From assembly GCA_964188305.1 (NCBI GenBank), contig OZ076903.1: DNA of 64,000 bases, one strand, 5' to 3'. The notes under the pieces are model-generated. The model did not search any database and was not told where the DNA came from. It saw only the letters and a list, made by a program, of their open reading frames with translations. Each line of letters starts with the position of its first letter. Within the stretch, counting starts at the first letter, position 1. Below, in pieces: positions 31,790 through 63,440 of the stretch. Source of the stretch: Podarcis bocagei. Lineage: Eukaryota. The translations under genes and the position numbers were made by a program.

Positions 31790-32500
31790 GGAAAGGGGGT
31801 GTCGAGAAAGCACCTGGGGGTCACCACCTCACTCTGCCCCCCCAGCCCCCGAGATCGCCCCCCTGCGCCCCCGAAGGGCCACCCCGCCTCGCCCGCCCAC
31901 CTTCGGCGATGACCTTCTTGATCCGCAGCTTCATCTCGCCCATCTCCACCACCTGCCCCACGAAGTCGTTCTGGTCCCGGCTGGCGGCCCCCAGGGAGCC
32001 GGGCCCCGCCAGGAACTCCAGCGCCGACTGCAGCAGCGACATGGCCAACTCCGCCCGGCGCAGCAGCAGCCGGGGACTGGCGCTCCCAGGACCAAGCAGA
32101 TCGCCAGGCCGGTTCCTTCGGCCGCTCCCGCTCCTGCCGTTTCACGAGCGCCAATCCTGGCCCTCCGCGGCCACCGTACTCCCCGCCGCCCCCGCCTCCC
32201 TCCTCTCCCTCAGCCCATTGCCGAAACCCGTTTCCGCCAACGACGCTCGTCGGAGGAGGAGGAGGGGCGAACGCGCTCGCCCCGCCCACATTCGCCTCCT
32301 AGCTCCGCCCCGCAGCTCCAGGGGAGATTTCCCCTCCTCCGCGCGTGGGCAGGGGGTTATAGAGAGAGAAAGTCGAAGAGCGGTCGGCGCGCTACCTGAT
32401 TCCGGGCACCGAGTTGAAAGCAGCACCAACGGGGGCCGCGTCGCCGTTTGCCAGGGCTCCTCGGGGGCCAAGCGAGCCTCACACAGGGCCGGCCCAAGAC
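31790..32500 (-). promoter_or_regulatory. CpG island / GAK promoter and 5' UTR
   Basis: Very GC- and CpG-rich, with GC boxes (ccgccc), surrounding GAK exon 1. Confidence 0.85.
31901..32042 (-). CDS. GAK: Cyclin G-associated kinase, coding exon 1 (MSLLQSALEFLAGPGSLGAASRDQNDFVGQVVEMGEMKLRIKKVIAE/G)
   Basis: Closely matches the human GAK N-terminus (MSLLQSALDFLAGPGSLG...). ATG at 32042-32040, GT donor at 31900-31899, 142 nt, inside a CpG island. Confidence 0.97.
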
Positions 32501-37844: not shown

Positions 37845-38670
37845 CCAGAAGCTTGGGGCGTGCTGAGGTCAGCGCGCCCCAAGCTTCTGCATGCCGGCAA
37901 GCAGTCCGCTGCCGCCCCAAGCCTTGCGCACCCGGCGGGACCTCCTGCCGGGTGCGGGAGGCTTGGGGCGGCAGCGGGCTGCTTGCCGGCATGCAGAAGC
38001 TTGGGGCGCGCTGACCTCAGCACTCCCCAAGCTTCTAGGTGCGCGCAAGCAGTCCGCTGCCGCCCCAAGCCTCCCGCACCCGGCGGGACCTCCTGCCGGG
38101 TGCGGGAGGCTTGGGGCGGCAGCGGACTGCTTGCCGGCATGCAGAAGCTTGGGGCGCACTGACCTCAGCACGCCCCAAGCTTCTAGGTGCGCGCAAGCAG
38201 TCCGCTGCCGCCCCAAGCCTCCCGCACCCGGCGGGACCTCCTGCCGGGTGCGGGAGGCTTGGGGCGGCAGCGGACTGCTTGCCGGCATGCAGAAGCTTGG
38301 GGCGCGCTGACCTCAGCACGCCCCAAGCTTCTAGGTGCGCGCAAGCAGTCCGCTGCCGCCCCAAGCCTTGCGCACCCGGCGGGACCTCCTGCCGGGTGCG
38401 GGAGGCTTGGGGCGGCAGCGGACTGCTTGCCGGCATGCAGAAGCTTGGGGCGCGCTGACCTCAGCACGCCCCAAGCTTCTAGGTGCGCGCAAGCAGTCCG
38501 CTGCCGCCCCAAGCCTTGCGCACCCGGCGGGACCTCCTGCCGGGTGCGGGAGGCTTGGGGCGGCAGCGGACTGCTTGCCGGCATGCAGAAGCTTGGGGCG
38601 CACTGACCTCAGCACGCCCCAAGCTTCTAGGTGCGCGCAAGCAGTCCGCTGCCGCCCCAAGCCTTGCGCA
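37845..38670. repeat. GC-rich 148-bp tandem array, about 5.5 copies, each unit made of two hairpins
   Basis: ORF starts recur every 148 nt (37891, 38039, 38187, 38335, 38483, 38631). Confidence 0.92.
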
Positions 38671-38672
38671 CC

Positions 38673-39005
38673 CTGCCTTCAGGGCGCCCGACGCTCCGAG
38701 AAGCAGGCTGCTATCCGCAGCCTAGGCAACCCTGTGGGACCTCCCACAGGGCTGCCTGGGCGGCGGAATTGTTCCCGAAGCGTCGGGCGCTCTGCCTTCA
38801 GGGCGCCCGACGCTCCGAGAAGCAGGCTGCTATCCGCCGCCTAGGCAACCCTGTGGGACCTCCCACAGGGCTGCCTGGGCGGCGGAATTGTTCCCGAAGC
38901 GTCGGGCGCTCTGCCTTCAGGGCGCCCGACGCTCCGAGAAGCAGGCTGCTATCCGCAGCCTAGGCAACCCTGTGGGACCTCCCACAGGGCTGCCTAGACT
39001 GCGGA
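38673..39005. repeat. 119-bp tandem array, about 2.8 copies, palindromic units
   Basis: ctgccttcagggcgcccgacgc recurs at 38673, 38792 and 38911. Confidence 0.9.
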
Positions 39006-39530: not shown

Positions 39531-39607
39531 TACCTACACACACACACACACACAAACACACATAATTTTATTTTCTTATATTCCTATTCCACCTTTCTTC
39601 TGTCATG

Positions 39608-39680
39608 GAACCCATGTAGTTCCCAGACAGTCGCCCATCCAGACACAAACCACCCCCAGACCTGCTTAGCTTCAGTAAGG
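39608..39680 (-). mobile_element. 5S rRNA-derived fragment (SINE3-like)
   Basis: Minus strand gaagctaagcagg..tggatgggcgactgtctgggaa resembles the 5S internal control region. Confidence 0.55.
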
Positions 39681-39825
39681 TGGTGAACTTTTGTTCTTTC
39701 ATACTGCAGCCTGGGACCTGTTCTACTTTCAAACCATTACCCTAATAAAAATCAATGAGGCACAGAAAAGTAATGAAGTTATATTTAAAAGCTTATAAAA
39801 TGACTTATTCGCAGAAACTTCACAT

Positions 39826-39831
39826 TTTATT
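39826..39831 (-). terminator. Candidate polyadenylation signal (AATAAA) of the MAT-like gene
   Basis: First AATAAA on the minus strand, about 225 nt after the stop codon. Confidence 0.55.
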
Positions 39832-40054
39832 CCTCCAGACACTTTAGATTTGATTGCCTTCTTTCAAACCTTGCCCCCTTCTTTTTGAGAGTCAACATTT
39901 TTTAAAACCATAATCTGGTTTTTCTGAAAAGGGTAAACCCAGATTAAATGCAGGGATTAATACAGGCTGCATTTTGAGGCCAACAATGTTGTGTGGATAC
40001 TGTGAGTAATTTGTTGTATTCCACAATAAATGCCAATCTGGAAGCAACCCATAA

Positions 40055-40157
40055 CTAGTAAACCAGCTTTTTAGGTTGTTCCCATGTAAATTCTTCTCTT
40101 CCAAAATGCCCGTAGCATGCAGTCTGTTGATAAATGGGACTCTTCAAGTTCAGTTCT
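40055..40157 (-). CDS. MAT-like exon 9: [33 protein letters not shown]
   Basis: Acceptor TACAG, 103 nt to the TAG stop. The nine exons sum to 1170 nt (389 aa plus stop) with no frameshift. Confidence 0.95.
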
Positions 40158-40162
40158 CTGTA
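40154..40162 (-). promoter_or_regulatory. METTL16 consensus nonamer UACAGAGAA spanning the last 3' splice site of the MAT-like gene
   Basis: Minus strand reads ...tctttgccTACAG|AGAActg, an exact match to the METTL16 motif of U6 and MAT2A hairpins. Function is unproven. Confidence 0.45.
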
Positions 40163-40913
40163 GGCAAAGAAAACATATTTCTGTTACCTCACAAGACTAG
40201 CAGAGAAATCCTAAGTGGCTTCAGAGCCACCACACTTCACACGAGGCTACTCAGAAGTAAGGGGAACAGTGTGAAAGCACCTGCTCAGATCAGGGCCTGT
40301 CTGAGAGCTAGGAATGGGTGGAACCCCCAGCTTCTATGTAAGCTCTGTCTAAACTGTTTCATTGCTGAAGCTTCAGATGTCCTGATTGGGATGGGATGGG
40401 ATGAATGAAGGCAGACAACGCCACATCTTGAATGGGTCAAGTAGGTTTTTTTTTACTTTTAACCTTCTTCCTTAAGGGTTTTTCAGATGGCGAGCTCTTT
40501 TACCTTTTCCTCACATATGACTAGAATAAACAGAAGGGAGTTCCGTTCCATTCAGATAAATGGACTGGATGATGGTAGTAGGGACAAACGCTCCATCATT
40601 TCAGACCATTTTATTCCAACCATCTGAGATAAGAATGGAACTTAGGTTCTCTAGAAGGTTTTCCTGATTAGTTTAGAGCTCTTAGGGGTCCTCTCTTCTA
40701 AGTTGGGCTGAGCCCACCAGGTGTAGCACGGGACTAACAAACGCTATCTAAAGAGTCCCCAAGCAAACTCTTGTGGCGGGTTGAATCCTGACCTCTCTTC
40801 AAAGTGAGAAATCCACTGGGTGTACTCTCAAGGCGAGGACACGTTCTTGGTCTCTCATCTGAAGGGAAAACTTTACCGTAGGCACCCAAAGATCCATTTT
40901 TAAAAGGACAAAC

Positions 40914-41047
40914 CTTATGATTGGCCCAAGGCGAAGGTCAAAGTTCTTCTGAATGATATCCAGCAGCTCATCTTCTGATCTGTCCGAAGTACCGTAATGA
41001 AACACCGAGATGGCCAGTGGGTGACTCAATCCAATCGCGTAAGACAG
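40914..41047 (-). CDS. MAT-like exon 8: LSYAIGLSHPLAISVFHYGTSDRSEDELLDIIQKNFDLRLGPII/R
   Basis: AG/GT bounded, 134 nt. Confidence 0.95.
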
Positions 41048-41815
41048 CTGAAGGATATAGAAGTTCGCTGTAGCTGAAGAGTATTTGAGTTCATATGAAC
41101 TGATAGCATTACAGCTTGGGATCTGTTCCTGGTTACTTTATCAGTGGATACCTGAACCAGGGTTGCCCTTGTCTAAGTCCAACACTTTCTCTCAACCACA
41201 CCACACTGACTCTTTTTAAACCACTTTGGATGCACGTGTGAAGCATCTCTCCAAGTTTCATTCAGAAAAGGGACCCCTTAATAATTAGAGGATTTGAGGA
41301 AACACTGGTATAATCTGTGCTATCCATAGTACCAACATGAGGCACAGCAGTTATGTACTTAGGAACCCACACCCCCATAAAATTAATACATTTTATGAAT
41401 GCAATTAACCCCTATTGTTTATCACACAGTTGAAAAAATGTCCACAATAAACGCAGCATTTGTAACATCACAATGGTTCCCATTGACTAAGGATGCTGCC
41501 TGGAAGATAACCTTGATTCGCAAATAGAAAATCAGTAACAGCTATAGGAAAATCCAAGGGGAGGAAAGCTGCAAACAGAGTTCTTCGAATGTTTCAAGCC
41601 AACTCTGTCAAGGGAAAGATTTGGTGCTACTCAATAAAGACAGCCTAGGACAGTTTTTCACTATCTCCTCTAACGAGACTTAGGCTGTGCACACATTGCT
41701 GGCTTAAAACAGCATTAGGTCATGCTTTTTCTCAGATCAAATTTGGTTTTGGGAACAACAGATCAGAAAAGCAGCACTTAGTAAGAAACAACAGGATAGA
41801 TATGAATGGCTGTAC

Positions 41816-42163
41816 CAGGTGGCGCTGTGGGTTAAACCACAGCCTAGGGCTTGCCAATCAGAAGGTCGGCAGTTCAAATCTCCGCGACAGGGTGAGTGCC
41901 CGTTGCTCGGTCCCTGCTCCTGCCAACCTAGCAGTTTGAAAGCACGTCAAAGTGCAAGTAGATAAATAGGTACCGCTCTGGCAGGAAGGTAAATGGCGTT
42001 TCCGTGCGCTGCTTCGCCACAAGCGGCTTAGTCATGCTGGCCACATGACCCGGAAGCTGTACACCGGCTCCCTCAGCCAATAAAGTGAGATGAGCGCCGC
42101 AACCCCAGAGTCGGCCACGACTGGATCTAATGGTCAGGGGTCCCTTTAACTTTACCTTTTACC
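41816..42163 (+). mobile_element. Sauria SINE in MAT-like intron 7
   Basis: Similar to the other copies in the window. Confidence 0.9.
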
Positions 42164-42372
42164 GCTTCCCAAACGACTGGTGAGAGCTCATTGGATGCAG
42201 AGTAAAAGGCAGTGTGTACACCACCTAAGGTTACCCGCGGTGCAGAGTTGTCCCAAGCAGTTTTTAATCACGCAGAACTCAGCATAAAGGCTTTCCTCCA
42301 AACATACTGGGTTTCATCTCTGTTGTGCAATTCCCCCACATTTGGTCCAAGGCTCCACTGGCCCCCTCTTAC

Positions 42373-42555
42373 CTGCACCAATACTCTCCTGCAAAGGCCT
42401 GCTTTCACCAGGGACTTTGCCACCCAGCGAGCTGCATAGGCTCCTGAACGATCAACTTTGGAGGGATCTTTCCCCGAAAAAGCACCCCCTCCATGAGCAC
42501 CCCAGCCTCCATAGGTATCCACAATGATCTTTCTGCCAGTCAGGCCAGCATCAGC
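42373..42555 (-). CDS. MAT-like exon 7: [61 protein letters not shown]
   Basis: AG/GT bounded, 183 nt, GGGAFSGKD signature. Confidence 0.97.
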
Positions 42556-42586
42556 CTGAAAAGAAAAGAAATACATTTTTTAAATA

Positions 42587-42796
42587 CTGTATTTTTCGCT
42601 CTATAAGATGCACCAGACCATAAGACGCACCTAGTTTTTGGAGGAGGAAAACAAAAAAATATATATATTCTGAATCCCTCTTGCTGTTCTGGCTTCTGGG
42701 AGAGCTGCGCAGCCTGCATTCGCTCCATAAGACACACACACATTTCCCCTTACTTTTCACGAGGGAAAAAGTGAGTCTTATAGAGCAGTAATACAG
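42587..42796. mobile_element. Short pogo-like MITE related to the 37619-39165 element
   Basis: Termini ctgtatttttcgctctataaga / tcttatagagcagtaatacag with TA flanks. Confidence 0.8.
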
Positions 42797-43356
42797 TAAA
42801 TAAAAAAAATCACCAGGATGTTTACTTTGCTAACAATGAGTGTCAAATTCATCTCTCAAGATCATAACCGCTTCAATATGTCATTGCAGTGTAAAAAGCC
42901 TGGCACCGGGATTGCAATCCCATGCCCACTTATCTAGGTGTAAACATAAATCAACAGGGCACACTTTTGAGGAGGCATGTATAGGATTCCACTACAACAG
43001 TGGTATCACACGCGCACAAACTGTTTGGAGCACAAATGTCTTTTTTAAGCAGCCTCAGGTTAAAGGGAAACTACAGACAAGGGTAGAAATTTAAGATTTA
43101 AATCAAGCAATAGCCTAGTAACCTTGCGGTACTTTATTTGTTGCATTGGGGTTGTGTTCTATCTCATTTACTAGCTTTGGCAAATGTCCCCCCCCCCCCG
43201 CAGATTGACATTTGTTCTGATTCAGCAGCAAACGGCAGTTTCCCCATAGAAAGAGGCAGGGCAAATGAAAAGCCAATCAGATTCATGCTTTCTCTCTCTC
43301 TCTCTCTCTCTCTCATTATTGTATATCTAGAGGTTTGGAGGTTAAGGGTACAATAC

Positions 43357-43575
43357 CTTAGGACCACCTGCTAGAAAGGCTTTACTCGGCAGGAGGTGAT
43401 AGACTGTGTTTTCATCCAGGTATTTTGCTGGAACCACTTCTTTCACAACTTTGTCCATCAGCTCTTTCTGTATTTTCTGCAATGGCACCCCAGGAGCGTG
43501 TTGTACAGAAATGACCAAGGTGTGCACTCGGATTGGCTCCAGCGCACCGCCGACTTCTCGGTATTCCATCGTGAC
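43357..43575 (-). CDS. MAT-like exon 6: VTMEYREVGGALEPIRVHTLVISVQH...YHLLPSKAFLAGGPK
   Basis: AG/GT bounded, 219 nt. Confidence 0.95.
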
Positions 43576-44541
43576 CTACAAGATTGGCCGTAGGTTTAAA
43601 CAGTTATATTTTTTGCTTCCGCCACTTTATACAACTCTGCTGAACAAGCCTGAGCTACTGTTTTGTTTTTCATCTATCTTCCGCTATCTTATGTTGCATT
43701 ATTTTATTGCATCCTGATCCTAAAAAGTAAGTTCCACCGAACTCCCAATAGAACCTTTCTATTAGTCACAGACACAAGATCTACCCACTTTGGAAGAATG
43801 TCAGATGAAGCTGATTGACTGTATGGGACTGGCAGAAATGACTGCTAGAATCCGTGACCAGGGAGAAGAGTCGGCAGAAGAAGACTGGAAAAAATTTAAG
43901 GACTATTTACAAAAATATTGTAAAATTAAGGAATGTTGAATGATGTTGGATTGAAATTAAGTGGTTTCAGGCTGTAATTATGATAAAATGACTTTCTTTT
44001 TGTAAGCAAGAATTTAAAGCTATAACAATTTAAGATGTTGAGATAAGGATTTGCTGTATAAACAATTTAAACTGGGTATACAAGAAGGGGAGGTATGAGG
44101 AGGTCGGGGAAATAAGTTATGAGAAAATAAGTTATGAAATTTATGTGTTTTTAATATTTTTATGTTTGTTTTTTCTTTTTGTTTGCAAAAAATTGGAAAC
44201 TTTAATAAATATCTTTTTTTTTTTAAAAAAAGAACCTTTCTATTAGTCACTTTAATTTTCTTTTTACTGCAATGCAGACATGAATCGGTATAGACAATAA
44301 GAAAATAATAAGAGTGTCTGGATCCAGCCAATGACCCATCTGCTCCAGCATCCTGTTCTCACAGTCGCTAACCAAATTCCTGCAAGCAGGATCTGAGGAC
44401 CAAGAGCACTCTCCCATCCTGTAGTTTCCAGAAACTGATATTCAGTAAAATACTGCTTTCAGCAGTGAAGGAAGAACACAGCCTTCAAGGTCAGTAGCCA
44501 CCGACTACTTGGAATATTGTGCAGAGAATGCTATCCTGGTA

Positions 44542-44858
44542 CAGTGGTACCTTGCAAGACGAATGCCTCGCAAGACGGAAAACTCGCAAAACGAAAGGGT
44601 TTTTGGTTTTTAGAGTTGCTTCGCAAGACGATTTTCCCTATGGGCTTGCTTCGCAAGACGGAAACGTCTTGCAAGTTTGTTTCCTTTTTCTTAAAACCGT
44701 TAATACAGTTGCGACTTGACTTCGAGTGTGGTAGCCTTTTTTGAGGTTTTTGAAGACTTTGGTATTTGTGAAGCTTTTCCAAAACTTTTCCGAAACCGTG
44801 CTTCGCAAGACGAAAAAACTCGTGGAACGAATTAATTTCGTCTTGCGAGGCACCACTG
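44542..44858. mobile_element. Tigger-like MITE (cgcaagacgaa family)
   Basis: TIRs plus TA flanks. Confidence 0.82.
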
Positions 44859-44904
44859 TATATCAAGAAAGATTCATCCACCTGCTGCTAACCAGCTAGC
44901 AAAG

Positions 44905-45283
44905 GGGATGCAGGTGGCGCTGTGGTCTAAACCACTGAGCCTCTTGGGCTCTCCGATTGGAAGGCCAGCGGTTTGAATCCCCAGGATGCAATGAGCTCCC
45001 ATTTCTCTTTCCCAGCTCCTGCCAACCTAGCAGTTCGAAAGCATACCAGTGCAAGTAGATAAATAGGTACCGCTGTGGCGGGAAGGTAAACGGCGTTTCC
45101 GTGCGCTCTGGTTTCTGTTCCATTGCACCAGAAGCGGTTTAGTCATGCTGGCCACACAACCCGGAAAGCTGTTGGTGGACAAACGCCGGCTTCCCTGGCC
45201 TGAAAGCAAGATGAGCGTTGCAACCCCATAGTTGCCTTTGACTGGAATTAACTGTCCAAGGGTACTTTACTTTTACCTTTACC
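44905..45283 (+). mobile_element. Sauria SINE in MAT-like intron 5
   Basis: Similar to the other copies; flanking repeat ctaaccagctagc. Confidence 0.9.
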
Positions 45284-45813
45284 TAACCAGCTAGCTTACT
45301 ACCGTAGTAGTCAGGATTGATGGACTGTGGAAGCTAAAGGATAAGCAATGTTTATTAAACCCAATCTACAGGTAGGATATCGGATCAGCATTCTATCCTG
45401 CAGAAAAGAAAGCAGAGGTCACACAGATCACTGTGACTTTAGCTGGGACACAGGAAGTTGCCTTGGCCGCTTTGAGAACAGGATGCTGAAGTGGAGAATG
45501 GACCTCTGGCCTGACCCAGCAGGGCTTGATTTATGTTCATAGGGTATGATTCAAACAGACAAACAGTTTGTTGGGTGAAGCTGTAGAGCCCAGCAGAAGC
45601 TTGATACCACTTGGCTCTGCCAGTTGTCTACACTAGGCCAGGGATGAACTGTATCCATATGTTGATTGTTTACAATATTCTAGCTTCAACATAGCTTTGA
45701 CCATGTTCACATGAGCCTTCAAATGGATAATTTCAATGGGACATAAGCATGTCTCACTTATTTCAGACTTCAGCTCTGCTCATTATTTTTGACAGTCCTT
45801 GGTATATACCAAC

Positions 45814-45957
45814 CTGTGTTTTCCCATCGGGTCGAAGCCAGGGCAGAACTCCATTTCTCTCCAGGGATTTAATCTTCCCGTTAAGTTTATGCGCAAGAAG
45901 GATAGTTAGGGGCATGCACTCCTCAGTTTCATCAGTGGCGTAACCAAACATCAAGCC
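45814..45957 (-). CDS. MAT-like exon 5: [48 protein letters not shown]
   Basis: AG/GT bounded, 144 nt. Confidence 0.96.
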
Positions 45958-46035
45958 CTGCGTTAGAAATCACATGGCTATATTTACCATAAGCATATTG
46001 GCTTCTTCTACAGCTTCGAGTGCAGATCGGCAATA

Positions 46036-46510
46036 CAGTGGTACCTCGGGTTAAGTACTTAATTCGTTCTGGAGGTCCGTTCTTAACCTGAAACTGTTCT
46101 TAATCTGAAGCACCACTTTAGCTAATGGGGCCTCCTGCTGCCGCCGTGCTGCCGGAGCATGATTTCTGTTCTTATCCTGAAGCAAAGTTCTTAACCTGAA
46201 GCACTATTTCTGTGTTAGCGGAGTCTGTAACCTGAAGCCTATGTAACCTGAGGTACCACTGTACAGTCATACCTCTTGTTACGTTTGCTTCATGTTACGT
46301 TTTTTCAGGTTGCGTCCTGCGGCGACTTGGAGGTACCGGAGAGGATTACTTCCGGGTTTCGCCGCTCGCGCATGCGCAGATGCACAAAATGACATCATGC
46401 GCAGAAGCGGCGAATCACGGACCTGTGCGTGCACAGACACAGGTTGCTTTCCTTTCATGTTGTGAATGGGCCTCTGGGACAGATCCCGTTCGCAACCAGA
46501 GGTACCACTG
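46036..46510. mobile_element. Two adjacent Tigger-like MITEs (46036-46261 and 46264-46510) sharing one TA
   Basis: Both have intact terminal inverted repeats, joined by a single TA. Confidence 0.8.
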
Positions 46511-46867
46511 TAAAGCAACACATGCAGAGGTAGAAGTGAGGCAGCTAACCTCTTCCCCTTCTTTCCCTCTAAAATTGAACTACAATTTCCAAGAGACAGC
46601 TACAATTCCCAGAGTGCTGAAGAATCAATCGCCCTTCCAGGGAACTCTGGAAATTTGAGGTCAGTGAGGAGGATAGAGGGTTCTCTTAACAACTTTCAGC
46701 ACTCTTAAGAAAAGACAGTTCCCAGGATATTCTGGGGGAAGCAATGACTACTTAAAGTAGTATGATACTGCCTTAAATGTACAACGCAGATGGGGTCACA
46801 GACAGAAAATGTAGGGGCCTGAAGTGCTTCATAGAAGAGGGTGGGAACCCAAACAGAAGCATGTTAC

Positions 46868-46980
46868 CTGGTCTCCAGCTCCAATATCATCCCCAGTCTT
46901 CCCCTCGGTGATGGCTTGTTTGATCTCATGGCACTGCTGCTCCAGGGCTACCAGCACAGTGCAAGTCTTGTAATCCAACC
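46868..46980 (-). CDS. MAT-like exon 4: [38 protein letters not shown]
   Basis: AG/GT bounded, 113 nt, GAGDQG signature, divergent gating loop. Confidence 0.95.
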
Positions 46981-47932
46981 CTGTGAAGTGAATAGCAAGC
47001 CACAATAATGGGCAACTGGCTTGGATGCAGAGGCCTGGTTGGCACATCACACCAGTGCTTGGAATGAATTAATTCAACTTAACTAATCACTGAATTAATT
47101 CCAAAAATCTCTGAATGACACCTGCAAGTAGTTCGTATGATTTCCAGGTGGACTGAACATTAAATTCCTTTTGTGGTGGAGTTTTGCATGGTTTTCAACT
47201 CAATTTTAATTCTAATTCAGCATCTCTGTATCTTTTACATCTGGATTTCATTACACTTAACTCAATGTTTGATGGTGGCCAATGCATTTACCATTTTCAC
47301 CTAAACATCATAATTGCTGGGAAAATAAATAAAACTCACTGAGTCATAGGAGGAGCAATTGTTGCAATCAGTCTCCTTTTAACCATTTAGACACATTGTA
47401 CTGCACAGGCTGTCACTAATTTTGAGTGGGATTCAATCACATTCCAATATATTCAGGTTGTGTAATTTAAATTGATGGTGAGGTCTTGCGCAATAAACCT
47501 GCTACCGTAAAATATCTGTTTTTTGCAAAAAACAGAAAGGGAAACGATGACTAAATGCACTGGAAACTGTGGGCTAACACTTGTTTCGACACAACATCGT
47601 TGAATCTTCCCAGAAACAATTCAGAACGAATGCTCATTAAATAGCCAGGGGATGATGGGAGTTGTAGTCCCAAACATTTGGGGGCGAGGCGGAGTTTGCC
47701 TATGCCTGTTCCAAAGAGACGGTGCTCCTTATAACATGTAGAAGCTGCTTCAAACTTCTCATTTCACACAACATCTTTCACAGCAGTTAGTGAAGCTTGT
47801 TAAGTGAGTAGATTCTAGGTAAAATAACATAATAGTCACCAAGAGGCTCTGATGAGCACCTACTTGTTTCCTCTTAAACAGAATCCATACTTGGTCTATC
47901 TCCAGTGGCTTATTCAAGTTACCACAACCCAC

Positions 47933-48055
47933 CTTTGGAAGAGTCATCATAACCAATCTTCTGGAGGGTGTCTCTCACTACTTGCTGGTAATCAATGATA
48001 GCTTTGGAGGTAATTTCACCACATAGCAAGATCATCCCAGTTTTGGCCACACATT
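47933..48055 (-). CDS. MAT-like exon 3: [41 protein letters not shown]
   Basis: AG/GT bounded, 123 nt, GEITS motif. Confidence 0.95.
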
Positions 48056-48095
48056 CTGCAGAAACATAATTCAAGAAAGCTAGTTATATAGTGGG

Positions 48096-48109
48096 ATAGA
48101 TAGATAGAT

Positions 48110-48156
<47 letters not shown>

Positions 48157-48168
48157 GATAGATAGATA
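48096..48168. repeat. (GATA)n microsatellite
   Basis: Direct reading. Confidence 0.95.
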
Positions 48169-48511
48169 CACACACACACCAAATATTTATTTTCCCCAAT
48201 ATAGACAGTGTGCACTTATGTCCCTGCTTGTATCTTTAAGGCATCCAGTTAAGGCCTTGTCCTGGATACCTGAAATTAGGCACATATCCACTCAGAGCAG
48301 GGCCTTGTCCAAATGGAACATTCTCCTTTGTAATGGTGACAACTTGCAAGTAAAGACCTTTCCATTTTGGGGGGGCATTTGCATTTTGAAGGGCATAGGT
48401 TCTGCAAATTTTAATTGGTTCGATAATTAAACAGTTTAGGCTGCCCTTCTAATCTCATAAGGCTGTCATGCGTCTTGATTTCCTGGACATTAATGGGATT
48501 TCAAAGGTGGA

Positions 48512-48770
48512 ACATTATGTGACATGTTCCCTGACAAAAAGTTGTTTTCAGGAAGAGAATAACTTAGGAAGAAATTGGCAAGGGCTGGTTTTCACTCAGC
48601 ATGCATGGAAGGGAACTATAAACAGTGACTCTGTACCTGAACTGCTGCCTTAATAACCATTTATCATAATAATCAAAGTCCAAGGGGTTATAACGGCTCT
48701 TAAGAAGCTCTTTGTAAGCAGTCCTCTGTGATCCTTGCCCATCTGGCTCCAAGCCAATTAATAATCAATA
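48512..48770 (-). repeat. Duplicate of the MAT-like ATG/promoter segment (52116-52368) inside intron 2
   Basis: Near-identical sequence; ORFs 48564..48752 and 52168..52350 translate almost identically. Confidence 0.92.
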
Positions 48771-49420
48771 GCTAATAGTCTGTGGTCAATATTGCCTGCC
48801 ATGTTTTGATATGCCCCCTTGGCTGTAAGTTTCCAGCCCTTGTAAATGATACTGACACACTTCTACATGAAATTGAAGGGTGTAGGTTCTGCTGTTATTA
48901 CTAGTCCTGCAAATTTTAATTGGTTCAATAATTAAACAGTTTAGGCGGCACTTCTAATCTCATAGGGCTGTCATGCGTCCTGATTTCCCTGGACATTAAC
49001 AGGATTTCAAAGGTTGAATTGATGCCCGGGGGGAATTTCCGAAAGGCAGCATTAAAAGAAAAAATTCTCAAGAACTCCAGAGTCTTCAACAATTTGTGTG
49101 GGGTCCTTTTTTTACTTTTTGAAATATGGCAACCCTATAATCCCAGTGTCGAAGGAGTATGTCCCACTGAATTTACTTCTGAGCAGGCATGGTTCAGATT
49201 GCACTGTAAAGCTATAATTCTATATCCCCTTACCCAGGAGCAGGGCTATTTTGTCAGCCAAAACTTGCCAGAGCTCAGTTCTAGCACCTCTCAAGTGGGC
49301 GCCATTGCCATTTGAAGAGAATGAGGACGGTGTTCACTGTGAGTTCTGGCACCTCTTTTTCGAGAAAAACAGCACTGCCCAGGAGTATACAATTTTGTTT
49401 TTGTTTTAATGGATGTGTAT

Positions 49421-49770
49421 AAAGGTAAAGGGACCCCTGACCATTAGGTCCAGTCGTGGCGGACTCTGGGGTTGTGGCGTTCATCTCGCTGTATAGGCCG
49501 AGGGAGCCAGCGTACAGCTTCCAGGTCATGTGGCCAGCAGGACTAAGCTGCTTCTGACGAACCAGAGCAGCGCACGGAAACGCCGTTTACCTTCCCACCG
49601 GAGTGGTACCTATTTATCTACTTGCACTTTGACGTGCTTTCGAACTGCTAGGTTGGCAGGAGCAGGGACAGAGCAACGGGAGCTCACCCCATTGCGGGGA
49701 TCGAACCGCCGACCTTCTGATCGGCAAGTCCTAGGCTCTGTGGTTTAACCCACAGTGCCACCCGCGTCCC
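49421..49770 (-). mobile_element. Sauria SINE in MAT-like intron 2
   Basis: TSD ttaatggatgtgtata. Confidence 0.92.
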
Positions 49771-50611
49771 TTAATGGATGTGTATAGAATTGTGCTATCA
49801 AGCTGTTGTTTGCCAATTGGTAAAATAATTTCAGCATTAGCCCTTTTGTTGTGTACTGTCTCCAACACCTAATTCCTAGTAGCATGGAGGCCTTAGCTTT
49901 AAGGTCCTGCTCTCCACTGTGGAATCTTTGTCTAGAATTTAGCCGACACTGGGCTTGAAATGTTTAAATTATGATGACTCTTTGCAACCACTTGGGATAC
50001 AATTACAACACAGGGGGAACACCTCTTTGCTACTCCCCCCCCCCCTTTATAATTAAACTAGGCAGAAAATGCGCTATAGTTCTGGGTACTGTTGAATAGC
50101 TTAGGCTCTAGAATGAAGCTTGCACAAATGGACACACATATAATAGTGGTAGTCTGCTGTACAGAAGTGAGGAGTCTTGCTGATGTTCTCCATATTCAGT
50201 TTCTTCCCCCTGCCTTATTGTCTAAAAAATAAAGTATAAGCATTTTGGCTGTTCACCTACTAAAAGAGTCAGAAAAATAGATGTTACGGGGGTTCAAAAT
50301 AGTGCAGAAATGGACAGAGGAGTTGTGCTGACACAGGAAGTGGCCAATACATGCCAATAATAGTTGCCCAGCTGCAGTACACCAGGTGCTTCAAGCTGCA
50401 ATGGATGCATCACCTTGAGAGGGGGAAAGGGAATATTTATTTCCCCAGAAATAAAGCTTATCGTTGGAGAAAGGCCATTTCTTCCTCAGTAATGAACACC
50501 TGCATTTTTACTGCACGCTTAAAAAAAAAAAAAAAACCCTGCAAAGGTGTAACGAAACACAAAACACAAACCCTCTGTAATTTGCTCTGCTAGGCCATAG
50601 ATGAGACTTAC

Positions 50612-50689
50612 CACAAGCAACCTTAGCATCTGGATCAACCTTAATATGAGCATCAAGAACAGCATCACTGATCTGGTCACACAGTTTAT
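50612..50689 (-). CDS. MAT-like exon 2: [26 protein letters not shown]
   Basis: AG/GT bounded, 78 nt, conserved [11 protein letters not shown] motif. Confidence 0.95.
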
Positions 50690-50992
50690 CTACACGGGTG
50701 GAAAGGAAAAAAACAAAAATAAGCCAGGTTTCTATAATTCATTTAGTTGTCAACTGCCTAAGAACAGGCTACCTAGGCTGCACTAGTTGGCCTGGAAGCC
50801 AATCCAGGTGGAATCTATGCACATATAAAAAATGTTCTGAAAATGCTTTTTTTGTATATATAAAAAAGCATTTTAAAAAACACATTGAATTTTCCATAAG
50901 GCTCACCATTGCCACCTAGTATCACATTGTATACTGCACTTAAAACACACTTAAAATGTTTTATTTGCAGCTGTATAGCTGAGTCGCCATTG

Positions 50993-51038
<46 letters not shown>
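50993..51038. repeat. (TTG)n microsatellite
   Basis: Direct reading. Confidence 0.95.
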
Positions 51039-51341
51039 ATTTAAAAGCAACATTTTTTCTGAGCTTTTCAGAGGTCACAATACCCTCCACAAGTACATCA
51101 AACATCCACCTGGGTTTGCTAGAAAGCAGTTAAATAAAGAAACCACTGGGATGACATTTGAGAACGTACATACCTCAGTGGTAGAGCACTTGCTTTGCAT
51201 GCATAATGCTTCAGGTTCAATCCCCACCATCTCCAGGTAGGTTGGGACAGACCTGTGCCTGAAATCCGGGGGGGGGGGGGGAGTTGCTGCCAGTCAGTGT
51301 AGACAACACTGTGCTAGATGGACCAATTGTCTGACTCAGTA

Positions 51342-51591
51342 CAGTCATACCTTGGATCCCAAACGCCTTGCGAGTCTAAAGTTTTGGCTTCAGAACACCT
51401 CAAACCCAGAAGTGAGTGTTCCAGTTTGCGAACCTTCCTTGGAACCCAAACGTCTGACGTGGCTTATGCGGCTTCCGATTGGCTACAGGAGCTTCCTGCA
51501 GCCAATTGGAAGCCGCACCTTGGTTCCTGAACGTTTTGGAAGTCGAACGGACTTCTGGAACGGATTCTGTTCAACTTCCAAGGTACCACTG
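51342..51591. mobile_element. Tigger-like MITE inserted into the tail of a tRNA-derived SINE (about 51170-51340)
   Basis: TIRs plus TA; SINE head ctcagtggtagagc...ggttcaatcccc lies upstream. Confidence 0.78.
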
Positions 51592-52056
51592 TATAGGGCA
51601 GCTTCTGGTGTTTTCCTGAGATCAGGCATTCGCCGGTTTGCTGAGTTGACTGTTAGAGCATTATGCATCCAGTTATTTCAGGCTCTCTTGTAAATAATTG
51701 AAAAAAGCACTTTTAAAGCATAGTTGTCAACGTTTCCCTTTTTTAAAGGGAAATTCCCTTATTCCGAATAGGATCCTCTCAAGAAAAGGGAAAAGTTGAC
51801 AGCTATGCTTATAAAGAGTTCAAAGCAAGACCGTACCCATCACTGAGCAAACATAACAAGCACTAAACCTGCTGTATTAAGACCAGTGAAAGCCACCTGA
51901 GCCGTCAGGTGGGGATGGAGCAAGAATTGAAAAAATTCATGGTTGGAAGCTTACTCTCTTCCATTCCTTCGGAAATTGGAGGCCTCAGAAGAGGCTATTA
52001 GAAAGTTACATTTTGCATTCACCAAACTGCTGGACAGGAAAGCCACATTCACTCAC

Positions 52057-52129
52057 CTGAATGTCCCTCAGCAACAGACTCAGACGTGAAGAGGAATCTC
52101 TTCTCTTTCAGGGCGACGTTATGTGACAT
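52057..52129 (-). CDS. S-adenosylmethionine synthetase (MAT family, divergent paralog), exon 1: MSHNVALKEKRFLFTSESVAEGHS/D
   Basis: FLFTSESVxEGH motif. ATG at 52129, GTGAGT donor after 52057, 73 nt; same phase-1 intron position as MAT1A/MAT2A. Confidence 0.92.
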
Positions 52130-52368
52130 GTTCCCTGACAAAAAGTTGTTTTCAGGAAGAGAATAACTTAGGAAGAAATTGGCAAGGGCTGGTTTTCACT
52201 TAGCACACATGGAAGGGAACTATAAAGAGTGTACCTGAGCTGCTGCCTTAATAACCATTTATCATAATGATCAAAGTCCAAAGGGTTATAACTGCTCTTA
52301 AGAAGCTCTTTGTAAGCAGTCCTCTGTGATCCTTGCCCATCTGGCTCCAAGCCAATTAATAATCAATA
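52130..52368 (-). promoter_or_regulatory. Non-CpG-island promoter/5' UTR of the MAT-like gene with an HNF4-type site (CAAAGTCCA, 52272-52280) and an HNF1/ONECUT-like element (attaataatcaat)
   Basis: Lies directly upstream of the ATG; motifs read by eye. Confidence 0.45.
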
Positions 52369-53460
52369 TCAAATTGCAAACATGTGCTGGATTATGGAGA
52401 AAGCTTGAGAGTTCCAGAAGGACATCTACTTCTGCTTCATTGACTATGCAAAAGCTTTTGACTGTGTCGACCACAGCAAACTATGGCAAGTTCTTAAAGA
52501 AATAGGAGTGCCTGATCACCTCATCTGTCTCCTGAGAAATCTCTATGTGGGACAAGAAGCTACAGTTAGAACTGGATATGGAACAACTGATTGGTTCAAA
52601 ATTGGGAAAGGAGTACGACAAGGCTGTATATTGTCTCCCTGCTTATTTAACTTATATACAGAATTCATCATGCGAAAGGCTGGGCTGAATGAATCCCTAG
52701 CCGGAATTAAGATTGCCGGAAGAAATATCAACAACCTCAGATATGCAGATGACACAACCTGGATGGCAGAAAGTGAGGAGGAATTAAAGAACCTTTTAAT
52801 GAGGGTGAAAGAGGAGAGCGCAAAATATGATCTGAAGCTCAACATCAAAAAAACGAAGATCATGGTCACTGGGACCATCACCTCCTGGCAAATAGAAGGG
52901 GAAGAAATGGAGGCAGTGAGAGATTTTACTTTCTTGGGCTCCATGATCACTGCAGATAGTGACAGCAGCCACGAAGTTAAAAGATGCCTGCTTCTTGGGA
53001 GAAAAGCAATGACAAACCTAGACAGCATCTTAAAAAGCAGAGACATCACCTTGCCAACAAAGGTCTGTATAGTTAAAGCTATGGTTTTCCCAGTAGTGAT
53101 GTATGGAAGTGAGAACTGGACCATAAAGAAGGCTGATCGCCGAAGAATTGATGCTTTTGAATTATGGTGCTGGAGGAAACTCTTGAGAGTCCCATGGACT
53201 GCAAGAAGATCAAACCTCTCCATTCTGAAGGAAATCAGCACTGAGTGCTCACTGGAAGGACAGATCGTGAAGCTGAGGCTTCAATACTTTAGCCACCTCA
53301 TGAGAAGAGAAGACTACCTGGAAAAGACCCTGATGTTGGGAAAGATGGAGGGCACAAGGAGAAGGGGACGACAGAGGATGAGATGGTTGGAAAGTGTTCT
53401 TGAAGCTACCAGCATGAGTTTGGCCAAACTGCGGGAGGCAGTGGAAGTGCCTGGCGTGCT
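52369..53460 (+). mobile_element. BovB/RTE-clade LINE, 5'-truncated, covering the RT domain
   Basis: ORF 52508..53470 has GVRQGCILSP, NLRYADD and RRIDAFELWCWRR motifs typical of RTE/BovB. Confidence 0.95.
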
Positions 53461-53499
53461 TTACCTTTAAGCAACAAGTGAGAGCTGCCTTGAGGTGCA

Positions 53500-54922: not shown

Positions 54923-55334
54923 TCATAGCCCGGAGGGCTGAAATTCTTCTTCAAGGACCTCCTCCACAGTCGCGTTCTCATAAGCAGGAGGGGGGGTGAG
55001 GGGCTCCGGACGTTCTGCCCGCTCTTCAACACCTTTGAGTTCGTGGGTATCAGAGACAAATCGCTGCAGTTTTGGCGGCATGAGCAACCTGAGGTGGAAC
55101 CGGGACTGTAGATCTGCCTCCGAGGCACGGTGTGTGCCTGGTGCCACCGAAACACTGAACGCCTCGACCACAGTCTCTCCGTGGGCAGGAGGCTCAATGA
55201 CCACGCTGTACGGAGGGGGTTCCACTGGGGTTGCCCCTTGGCTGGAGGTGATGGTCCAGATGGTTGGTCCCGATAAGTAGCCAGTAGTCACCATCTCCTC
55301 ATATGCCGGGGCCTCATAGGCCTCATTGTCTATG
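54923..55334 (-). CDS. TMEM139/TMEM51-family-like terminal coding exon (IDNEAYEAPAYEE...PPPYS...EPLTPPPAYE...*)
   Basis: Strong polypyrimidine tract and CAG acceptor at 55335-55337, then an open frame to TGA. The motifs DNEA.E.P.YEE, PPPYS and EPLTPPPAY match the TMEM139 cytoplasmic tail. No upstream TM exon was found. Confidence 0.75.
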
Positions 55335-55730
55335 CTGGTAAAAGAGAGGGGAAGTAGTTAAAAACCCAAATCATTATAATAGTTCCATGCTAGTCACTGA
55401 AGTCACCACCCTCCCATGCTAATACTTAAGAGAAAGGGAGCCAATTGTTATTTGGGCAGTGTGGGATAGAGAGACAGAAAGAGATAGATAGGGATAGACA
55501 GAGAGAGAGGGATAGAGAGATAGAGAGAGATAGCAGTTGCATTGGAAGTAAGCACGGACACCGCAGGGATTTGAACCCCGTCCTGGGAACCAGGAGCGCC
55601 AACCACCAGTGTCTTTTGCTTTTTTTTTGAGCAATGCAACAAGGGGAAAAGCAAAACCTGAGAGAACATTCTGCAAACGTTCTCTCAGGAAAAAGAAAAC
55701 CTTAAGATGTTAAGAAGAGCTCTTTGGATA

Positions 55731-62889: not shown

Positions 62890-63440
62890 TCCAAGGAGCG
62901 GGTTTTTTTGCTTTGCGTCTTTCCCGTTCCAATTTCCCGCCCCGGAGGGAACCGGGCAGCGCCTCCTCGCGAAGCCGAGGCCGCCGAGAGCGGGGCGGGC
63001 CTGGGCGGAGGAGGCGGGCGGTGTTGGCGGCCGGCCTCCGCGACGAGGAGGGAGGGCGGGCTCTGCTTTGAGGCCCGCCCGGCATGCGAGGAGCGGGATG
63101 GCCGAAGCCGGGGACTATGTCGCCGTGGTCTCTCCGTCGACGCCGCCCCCCGGCCCGGGCAGGCCTCGCGGCGGGGAGCTGGGCGGCGGCACCCAGGCCT
63201 CGCAGCGCCTGCTGGCCTATAGCGACGCCCTGCTCTCCATCATCGCCACCGTCATGGTGAGTCTCTCGGAGGGCGGCCGGGCAGCCCAGTCAGGCGCGCC
63301 CCTTGCTGTGGGAGGGCGGGTGGAGCTGCACCTGTCGGAGTCCCGCCTGCTGCGCTAGACAGGCTGGGAGCAGGAACGAGGCGCAACTCCGGGGCTGCCC
63401 TTTGGCATGGAAGGGGCGAGGTTTCTGCAGCAGCGCGTCT
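62890..63440 (+). promoter_or_regulatory. CpG island / TMEM175 promoter
   Basis: GC- and CpG-rich with several GGGCGG boxes. Confidence 0.85.
63098..63256 (+). CDS. TMEM175: TMEM175 lysosomal K+/H+ channel, first coding exon (MAEAGDY...TQASQRLLAYSDALLSIIATVM)
   Basis: Matches human QRMLSFSDALLSIIATVM. Strong Kozak context gggATGg, GTGAGT donor at 63257, and synteny with GAK. Confidence 0.94.

Follow-up and report, generated by a model that had tools for sequence, protein, structure and literature searches.

A squamate member of the MAT2A-like family of S-adenosylmethionine synthetases, located between TMEM175 and GAK

Background

Mammal-based textbook accounts give vertebrates two catalytic S-adenosylmethionine (SAM) synthetase genes. 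A stretch of 64,000 nucleotides from the lizard Podarcis bocagei (the window, by which we mean the whole of this sequence) holds what an initial annotation, made from the letters alone, described as a third such gene, neither MAT1A nor MAT2A. The locus therefore raises the question of which family this gene belongs to, how old it is, and whether it is a working gene at all. We conclude, with a probability of roughly 90%, that squamates have here their orthologue of the 'MAT2A-like' gene of vertebrates, known in zebrafish as mat2al. The name mat2al (methionine adenosyltransferase II, alpha-like) was given in zebrafish in 2012 to what is there a cloned, expressed gene (PMC3410756), and because the family has had a name since then, novelty is low. 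Members are labelled 'S-adenosylmethionine synthase-like' in RefSeq for geckos, amphisbaenians, turtles, crocodilians, birds and lungfish. The window gene is thus a copy of an already annotated family and not a new gene: the initial annotation described a real gene, and did not recognise that its family was already known as mat2al. Its wider interest is that a third SAM synthetase gene, strongly constrained and differing in its active-site gate, persists in most bony vertebrates other than mammals, and that the gene lies at different sites in sauropsids (GAK-TMEM175) and in ray-finned fishes (synaptobrevin/UBX), an evolutionary point worth following.

Gene structure and conserved residues

On the minus strand, from 52129 down to 40055, nine GT-AG exons splice into a stop-free methionine adenosyltransferase (MAT); the joined coding sequence of 1170 nt is in frame and encodes 389 amino acids followed by a stop codon. 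Starting from the visible peptide pieces, a search by length and splice site yielded a single consistent model, which reproduces exactly the exon lengths first listed for the locus. All introns begin with GT and end with AG, and pyrimidine-rich tracts precede most acceptors. Coding exon 1 (52057..52129, 73 nt; all exons are on the minus strand) starts with the ATG at 52127-52129, and its N-terminus, M-S-x-N, is common to the aligned gecko, turtle and bird orthologues. Exon 2 (50612..50689, 78 nt), flanked by AG and GT, has the same length in all orthologues and in mat2aa; exon 3 (47933..48055, 123 nt) was placed by the splice model and by comparison of exon lengths. The divergent gating loop discussed below is encoded by exon 4 (46868..46980, 113 nt), which is followed by exon 5 (45814..45957, 144 nt), by exon 6 (43357..43575, 219 nt), which encodes the central domain with the clade-typical YHLLPS, by exon 7 (42373..42555, 183 nt), which encodes C-terminal domain sequence with GGGAFSGKD, by exon 8 (40914..41047, 134 nt), and by exon 9 (40055..40157, 103 nt), which includes the stop codon at 40055-40057.

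Exon lengths are identical in the MAT-like genes of the window and of the bird Pipra, and those of mat2al in bowfin, milkfish and handfish and of true mat2aa differ in the first exon only (67-91 nt). Since the internal exon lengths are those of true mat2aa, the gene is not a retrocopy, as had been argued initially; a processed copy is ruled out by the eight introns, all placed as in mat2aa.

Exon 6 matches the Pfam central domain of S-AdoMet synthetase (PF02772) and exons 7 and 8 match the C-terminal domain (PF02773), while the colinear gecko orthologue, 89% identical, matches all three S-AdoMet_synt domains (N, M and C) with E-values from 1e-40 to 1e-66. Both MAT family signatures reported at the outset are present in the translation, the first straddling the exon 4/5 junction and the second (GGGAFSGKD) lying in exon 7. 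His29, Asp31, Glu57, Gln113, Ile117, Asp134, Asp179 and Lys181, residues that we take from MAT structures to have catalytic or metal-binding roles, are unchanged in the window protein and invariant or nearly so across the clade (His29 in 23 of 24 MAT-like sequences), and the alignment shows that the Phe stacking on adenine is retained as well, together with the motifs xDAGLTGRK and SGKDxxKxD. Between 114 and 128 the gating loop departs from that of MAT2A at most positions, and this altered active-site loop runs through the whole MAT-like clade.

Orthology

Homologues were searched stepwise, from window exon 6 to a frog MAT1A fragment, then to a fish exon-6 fragment, and from there to a lungfish isoform. 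The window protein is 89.5% identical to gecko Euleptes P0401 ("S-adenosylmethionine synthase-like"), 85.6% to the turtle protein, 83.8% to that of the bird, 78% to that of lungfish and 75-78% to fish mat2al, and only about 70-72% to MAT1A and MAT2A. In a careful maximum-likelihood tree it belongs to the mat2al/MAT-like clade (support 100/98), which is separate from those of MAT1A and MAT2A; the members of this MAT-like clade are sauropsid, lungfish and ray-finned fish proteins, its inner topology matches the species tree, and the window protein pairs with that of Rhineura (100/94), with the gecko next out. The MAT1A clade (100/95) holds frogs, caecilians, newts, mammals, birds, turtles, the coelacanth and fishes. 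Approximately unbiased (AU) tests reject the grouping of squamate MAT-like proteins with MAT2A (p 4.5e-52) and with MAT1A (p 9.9e-34), so that the window protein, lying outside both clades, is an orthologue of neither. The tree and the tests thus bear out the initial view of a third MAT of the catalytic type, distinct from MAT1A and MAT2A; the outcome that was to count against that view, a nesting within squamate MAT1A or MAT2A, is the one that the AU tests turn down. A fast-evolving squamate-specific duplicate (a lineage-specific duplicate was the other possibility then offered) or a relocated copy of MAT1A or MAT2A would suit the similar identity to both (about 70-72%) and the mosaic-looking residues, but is effectively excluded by the tree and by AU p-values below 1e-30 for both placements, by 84-89% identity to gecko, turtle and bird proteins in one clade with fish mat2al, and by the separate MAT2A of the gecko and the separate MAT1A of the turtle Trachemys, which these species have besides their MAT-like genes.

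The mosaic character of the sequence, MAT1A-like at some sites and MAT2A-like at others, was first taken as a mark of this gene; it is real in the alignment but not peculiar to the window: it is common to the whole mat2al clade and consists partly of ancestral states, and the LLCGEITS form occurs also in ray MAT2A. Direct orthologues are the RefSeq proteins of Euleptes (P0401), Rhineura (P0447), Trachemys (P0407), Gavialis (P0385), Pipra (P0420) and Protopterus (P0384); sauropsid models of full length, like the lungfish X1 isoform, have 389 amino acids, are colinear with the window protein and 78-89% identical to it, and differ from it by species-level substitutions only, the squamate branch being somewhat longer. 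With the mat2al of zebrafish and other ray-finned fishes the window gene shares, besides the clade and the internal exon lengths, the derived motifs GHSDK (for GHPDK), ACECVAKTG, a QQC-x-EI gating loop and YHLLPS, whereas KDPSK and DLRLG exemplify additional changes peculiar to the sauropsid copies. MAT2A has the same fold, domains, intron positions and catalytic residues, but is about 71-72% identical, has a different gating loop and extends further at the N-terminus than the window protein. MAT1A likewise agrees in fold, domains and catalytic residues, and in TACYGHFG and the Cys of LLCGEITS, but is about 69-70% identical and forms a clade of its own.

Selective constraint and expression

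Squamates and birds separated roughly 280 million years ago. Between the window gene and that of Pipra, the one comparison from which the ratio was taken (the Trachemys stretch is without exon 9 and contains 3,991 N), dN/dS is 0.058 by the NG86 method and 0.076 by maximum likelihood, so that the check on selection proposed in the initial annotation speaks for strong constraint.

The immediate 5' flank could be read as that of an unexpressed relic, or of a young pseudogene whose frame is still open: it lacks a CpG island, and both a LINE reverse-transcriptase fragment, some 280 bp upstream, and a local duplication abut the start codon. The duplication extends into the first codons, the segment 52116..52368 (minus strand; 5' flank and first 14 nt of the coding sequence) having a 94% identical copy in intron 2 at 48512-48770. 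We nevertheless consider a relic very improbable, given the nine intact-frame exons with canonical splice sites, the intact catalytic residues and a dN/dS of 0.06-0.08 since the split from birds. Sampling of RNA-labelled runs points the same way: six such runs contain 0.13-0.14 of the sampled words of 40000-46100, a word share and not a count of spliced reads, and this equals the share of the interval taken up by exons and the first 55 nt of the 3' UTR (838 of 6101 nt, or 0.137).

Genomic position, age and origin

The gene lies between GAK and TMEM175, as first proposed. Downstream and in the same orientation is GAK, whose first coding exon (31899..32045, minus strand) is 94% identical over 49 amino acids to that of a Pipra gene with the Pkinase+PTEN_C2+DnaJ architecture of GAK. 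TMEM175 is the divergent upstream neighbour; its first coding exon (63191..63259, plus strand) lies in a GC-rich island and is 91% identical over 23 amino acids to its Pipra counterpart. Both exons were identified by comparing translated sequence with the annotated locus of the bird, Pfam having recognised neither of these short first exons. The order in Pipra, TMEM175(-)/MAT-like(+)/GAK(+), is that of the window. The comparison of synteny suggested earlier thus gave a divided answer, with Pipra sharing the GAK-TMEM175 site and ray-finned fishes having the gene elsewhere. In bowfin, milkfish, paddlefish and bichir a synaptobrevin of 101-102 amino acids (annotated as 216 aa in bowfin) is followed by mat2al and then by a UBX protein, with an RRM protein and a 309-aa PP2A-like phosphatase where the flanks extend far enough; the position of handfish mat2al is also unlike the GAK-TMEM175 locus of bird and window.

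A ray MAT2A falls inside the MAT2A clade, and the MAT-like lineage must therefore have split off earlier under any of the three resolutions of the paralogue clades; judged from the tree, the MAT-like gene is at least jawed-vertebrate in age. The best tree sets MAT-like outside MAT1A+MAT2A (96/86), and the other orders stay unrejected (AU p 0.16 for MAT-like+MAT2A, 0.10 for the further one). No MAT-like member from mammals or amphibians was found among the matches listed, and none from amphibians, coelacanth or sharks within the best 120 matches. Together with the grouping with fish and lungfish proteins, the lack of a mammal among the matches listed upholds the original suggestion of an ancient paralogue absent from mammals. 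We propose that this third catalytic MAT goes back to a duplication at the DNA level, in the common ancestor of jawed vertebrates at the latest, that purifying selection has kept it in ray-finned fishes, lungfish and sauropsids, in the last of which it lies between TMEM175 and GAK, and that it went missing, presumably by loss, from mammals and, by the searched collection, from amphibians. The searched literature yielded no account of such losses. For an origin in the vertebrate genome duplications, the age of the split fits, and the fish and sauropsid gene positions, with flanks covered to 10 kb, disagree.

The wholly different neighbourhoods (synaptobrevin/UBX in fishes, TMEM175/GAK in sauropsids) could mean that the sauropsid gene and ray-finned mat2al are two ohnologues, reciprocally lost, and not orthologues. 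The basal split of the clade into sarcopterygian and actinopterygian members agrees with this, although it is predicted by either scenario. We regard this as improbable: a long stem of 0.21 changes per site is common to the two groups, as are many derived motifs, and two such genes per species occur, among the matches listed, in polyploid sturgeons only. MAT-like proteins also evolve 1.7-2.2 times faster than MAT1A and MAT2A, within sauropsids as well as across the bony-fish split, so that the deep divergence does not exceed what speciation would predict.

Less unlikely, though still improbable, is that an ancient local duplication in linkage with MAT2A, and not whole-genome duplication, gave rise to the gene, which moved later to the GAK-TMEM175 site on the way to sauropsids. 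Human MAT2A is situated near VAMP8, and the neighbour of fish mat2al is the 101-aa synaptobrevin; in a PDB search, however, VAMP4 and VAMP8 score alike for that neighbour. In handfish a distance of 5.3 Mb separates mat2al from mat2aa on one 12-Mb chromosome, although some 5 Mb is weak evidence of linkage in a teleost, and in zebrafish both genes are on chromosome 10 (PMC3410756). The MAT-like+MAT2A grouping that would speak for a local duplicate is unrejected, but it is not that of the best tree.

Activity and regulation

The catalytic residues are retained. Like MAT1A and MAT2A, the enzyme encoded by the window gene most likely forms S-adenosylmethionine out of ATP and methionine. The gating loop is altered across the MAT-like clade, and kinetics or regulation different from those of MAT1A and MAT2A are therefore to be expected. 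No enzyme assay of any mat2al-type protein was found in the searched literature, and a protein atlas search returned generic MAT clusters only.

MAT2A 3' UTRs bear several METTL16 hairpins. No copy of the corresponding UACAGAGAA motif was found in the 2 kb past the stop codon of the window gene. A broader reading is that the rewritten gate, the non-CpG promoter and the want of a MAT2A-type 3' UTR sensor give a working third catalytic isozyme its own kinetics, product inhibition or regulation, and that fishes and sauropsids draw their SAM supply from three catalytic enzymes, of which mammals and amphibians each gave one up; we put this forward tentatively, at slightly under even odds.

The sequence UACAG/AGAA at the last 3' splice site was considered as a regulatory feature of the family and set aside, because the bird and fish orthologues and mat2aa do not share it. 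Past the stop codon, candidate poly(A) hexamers at 39826-39831 and 39567-39572 bound the stretch 39567..39831 (minus strand), which would give a 3' UTR of about 220-480 nt.

Gene structure

We searched the minus strand for stretches of the exon lengths proposed in the initial annotation, each containing the visible peptide pieces and flanked by AG and GT. The search had a unique solution for seven exons: exon 1 (52057-52129), exon 2 (50612-50689), exon 3 (47933-48055), exon 4 (46868-46980), exon 6 (43357-43575), exon 8 (40914-41047) and exon 9 (40055-40157). Exon 5 (45814-45957) and exon 7 (42373-42555) had extra candidates, and the chosen pair keeps the frame open. The spliced coding sequence is 1170 nt long, with 389 codons before the stop; all introns have GT-AG ends, and a pyrimidine tract precedes most acceptors. 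The nine-exon gene was described accurately at the outset. By Pfam, exons 6-8 carry the central and the C-terminal domain of MAT, and exon 6 matches the human MAT1A and MAT2A chains equally (E about 4e-21).

All nine exon lengths recur in the annotated orthologue of the bird Pipra, and the eight internal and terminal lengths are also those of mat2al of bowfin, milkfish and handfish and of the bona fide mat2aa of handfish; the first exon alone varies (67 nt in bowfin, 79 in milkfish, 73 in handfish mat2al and 91 in handfish mat2aa). Since these lengths are common to MAT-like and mat2aa, the duplication copied an intron-containing gene, and the view that this is not a retrocopy holds.

Family identity and age

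A search with exon 6 among 1.8 billion cluster representatives yielded numerous fragments of exon size with YHLLPS in place of the YHLQPS of MAT1A and MAT2A, and two more searches led to named proteins. NCBI's name for this type is "methionine adenosyltransferase II, alpha-like" among ray-finned fishes and "S-adenosylmethionine synthase-like" in lungfish, gharial, turtles, gecko, amphisbaenian and birds. The spliced protein is 89.5% identical to a colinear gecko protein (P0401, 389 aa), 85.6% to turtle, 83.8% to Pipra, 78% to lungfish and 75-78% to fish mat2al, versus about 70-72% to any MAT1A or MAT2A. Zebrafish mat2al, cloned and named in 2012, is 73-75% identical to both human enzymes and is expressed beyond the liver (PMC3410756). 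The family is already named, and its sauropsid genes are already labelled by automatic annotation; in the literature searched, we found no paper treating the gene in sauropsids, its mammalian loss or the biochemistry of its product.

With a site-heterogeneous model, the maximum-likelihood tree (57 proteins) contains three vertebrate clades: MAT1A (support 100/95), MAT2A (97/92, with two rays basal) and MAT-like (100/98). Branching within the last mirrors the species tree: lungfish and sauropsids form one half, and the other holds bichir, sturgeon plus paddlefish, gar, bowfin and teleosts. The window protein pairs with Rhineura (100/94), and gecko comes next, which places the source among the non-gekkotan squamates. 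Placing squamate MAT-like inside MAT2A or MAT1A costs 195 log-likelihood units in each case and is rejected (p-AU 4.5e-52 and 9.9e-34, respectively), which bears out the initial annotation in assigning the gene to neither. MAT-like lies outside MAT1A+MAT2A in the best tree (96/86), where the outgroups are distant, and AU rejects neither a grouping with MAT2A (p 0.16) nor one with MAT1A (p 0.10). Under all three resolutions the MAT-like split predates the divergence of rays and bony vertebrates, which makes the paralogue at least as old as jawed vertebrates.

Locus history and distribution

GAK occupies the minus strand from the start of the window up to its first coding exon (31899-32045), and the first coding exon of TMEM175 is at 63191-63259 on the plus strand; these two exons are 94% and 91% identical, respectively, to the annotated Pipra genes. 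In Pipra the three genes are arranged and oriented alike, with a divergent TMEM175 followed by MAT-like and GAK. This neighbourhood extends to a bird; it does not extend to the ray-finned fishes examined. Bowfin, milkfish, paddlefish and bichir have a synaptobrevin gene of 101-102 aa (216 aa in the bowfin annotation) on one side of mat2al and a gene with a UBX domain on the other; beyond these come an RRM protein and a PP2A-like phosphatase of 309 aa. The handfish neighbours differ again. Because the bird shares the position and ray-finned fishes do not, the GAK-TMEM175 location is old within sauropsids and is not, in any simple way, ancestral to bony vertebrates.

We favour orthology of sauropsid MAT-like and fish mat2al with one relocation, as suggested by their long common stem, their many common derived residues and a deep divergence that scales with the clade's general rate. 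Two ohnologues, reciprocally lost in sauropsids and ray-finned fishes, are a possible alternative, and the gene may also have begun as a local duplicate in linkage with MAT2A: in the handfish Brachionichthys hirsutus, mat2al (2.02 Mb) and mat2aa (7.35 Mb) lie 5.3 Mb apart on the 12-Mb chromosome CM082280.1 (loci L006 and L007), and zebrafish chromosome 10 carries both genes (PMC3410756).

With the lungfish protein as query against annotated proteins, every MAT-like protein outscores the MAT1A and MAT2A of frogs, caecilians, newts, mammals (including platypus), coelacanth and rays, and none of these groups has a MAT-like member among the best 120 matches listed. For mammals and amphibians, this absence among the matches listed points to separate losses.

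Constraint, predicted function and expression

Between the window and Pipra, dN/dS is 0.058 (NG86) or 0.076 (ML), with dS of 1.3-1.8, and so is not near 1, the value that, joined with a lack of expression, would have told against the initial annotation's gene; against fishes silent sites are saturated, and the ratios are low as well. Over the same species pairs, MAT-like evolves at 1.7-2.2 times the rate of MAT1A or MAT2A: 11% versus 6% differences from turtle to bird, 24% versus 14% from turtle to bowfin, and 25% versus 11% from gecko to sturgeon.

The residues that we take to be catalytic or metal-binding in MAT structures (His29, Asp31, Glu57, Gln113, Ile117, Asp134, Asp179, Lys181, the stacking Phe and, within the motifs DAGLTGRK and SGKD-x-x-K-x-D, the Asp, Arg and Lys residues) are all kept in the window protein and in nearly all MAT-like members. 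The active-site gating loop (positions 113-131), near-invariant in MAT1A and MAT2A, has a different skeleton in MAT-like: Gln, Cys, x, Glu and Ile come first, followed by three positions that vary, Val or Ile, four more positions in which a Gly-(Lys/Arg) pair is invariant, and finally acidic residues. From this combination we would expect an active SAM synthetase with kinetics or regulation unlike those of MAT1A and MAT2A.

Exon 7 (61 aa, in frame) is skipped in numerous MAT-like isoforms that are annotated at about 328-335 aa, among them those of Rhineura (P0447), Gavialis (P0385), Carettochelys (P0387), Protopterus (P0297) and several fishes, as it is in annotated MAT1A isoforms of 332 aa. 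Such products lose the GGGAFSGKD region and should be inactive.

In six RNA-labelled runs (two organism labels), 0.13-0.14 of the sampled words of 40000-46100 are present, close to the 0.137 of that interval made up by five exons and 55 nt of 3' UTR; DNA runs contain 0.5-0.86. This agreement is indirect evidence that the gene is expressed.

Other features around the gene

The sole UACAGAGAA, a METTL16-type motif, in the 64-kb window (expectation about 0.35 per strand) lies at 40154-40162 on the minus strand, across the acceptor site of the final intron of MAT-like. The orthologues in Pipra, bowfin, milkfish and handfish, like the mat2aa of handfish, lack it there and have ag|GGAGCT or ag|GGATCT, so conservation of the motif would be limited to, at most, squamates.

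A 259-bp stretch at 52116-52368 (the 240 bp preceding the start codon plus the opening 14 nt of coding sequence) is repeated inside intron 2 at 48512-48770, in the same orientation and at 94% identity; as an M-S-x-N start is common to other sauropsids, the start-codon copy looks original and the intron 2 copy a local duplication. A 353-aa stop-free LINE reverse-transcriptase fragment (52409-53467, plus strand; Pfam RVT_1, E 3e-26) lies close to the start codon, about 280 bp upstream, and the MAT-like 5' end has no CpG island (GC 0.41), in contrast to those of GAK and TMEM175. Between MAT-like and TMEM175, a 144-aa open stretch with PPxY-like motifs (54926-55357, minus strand) matches the C-terminal half of Pfam TMEM51 above cut-off (E 1.8e-7); the corresponding Pipra interval is much shorter, with no gene called. 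In the interval from the 3' end of MAT-like to the promoter of GAK, a pair of GC-rich tandem arrays lies side by side at 37846-38995: one has 5.6 copies of a 148-bp unit (97% match), the other 2.7 copies of a 119-bp unit (99%).
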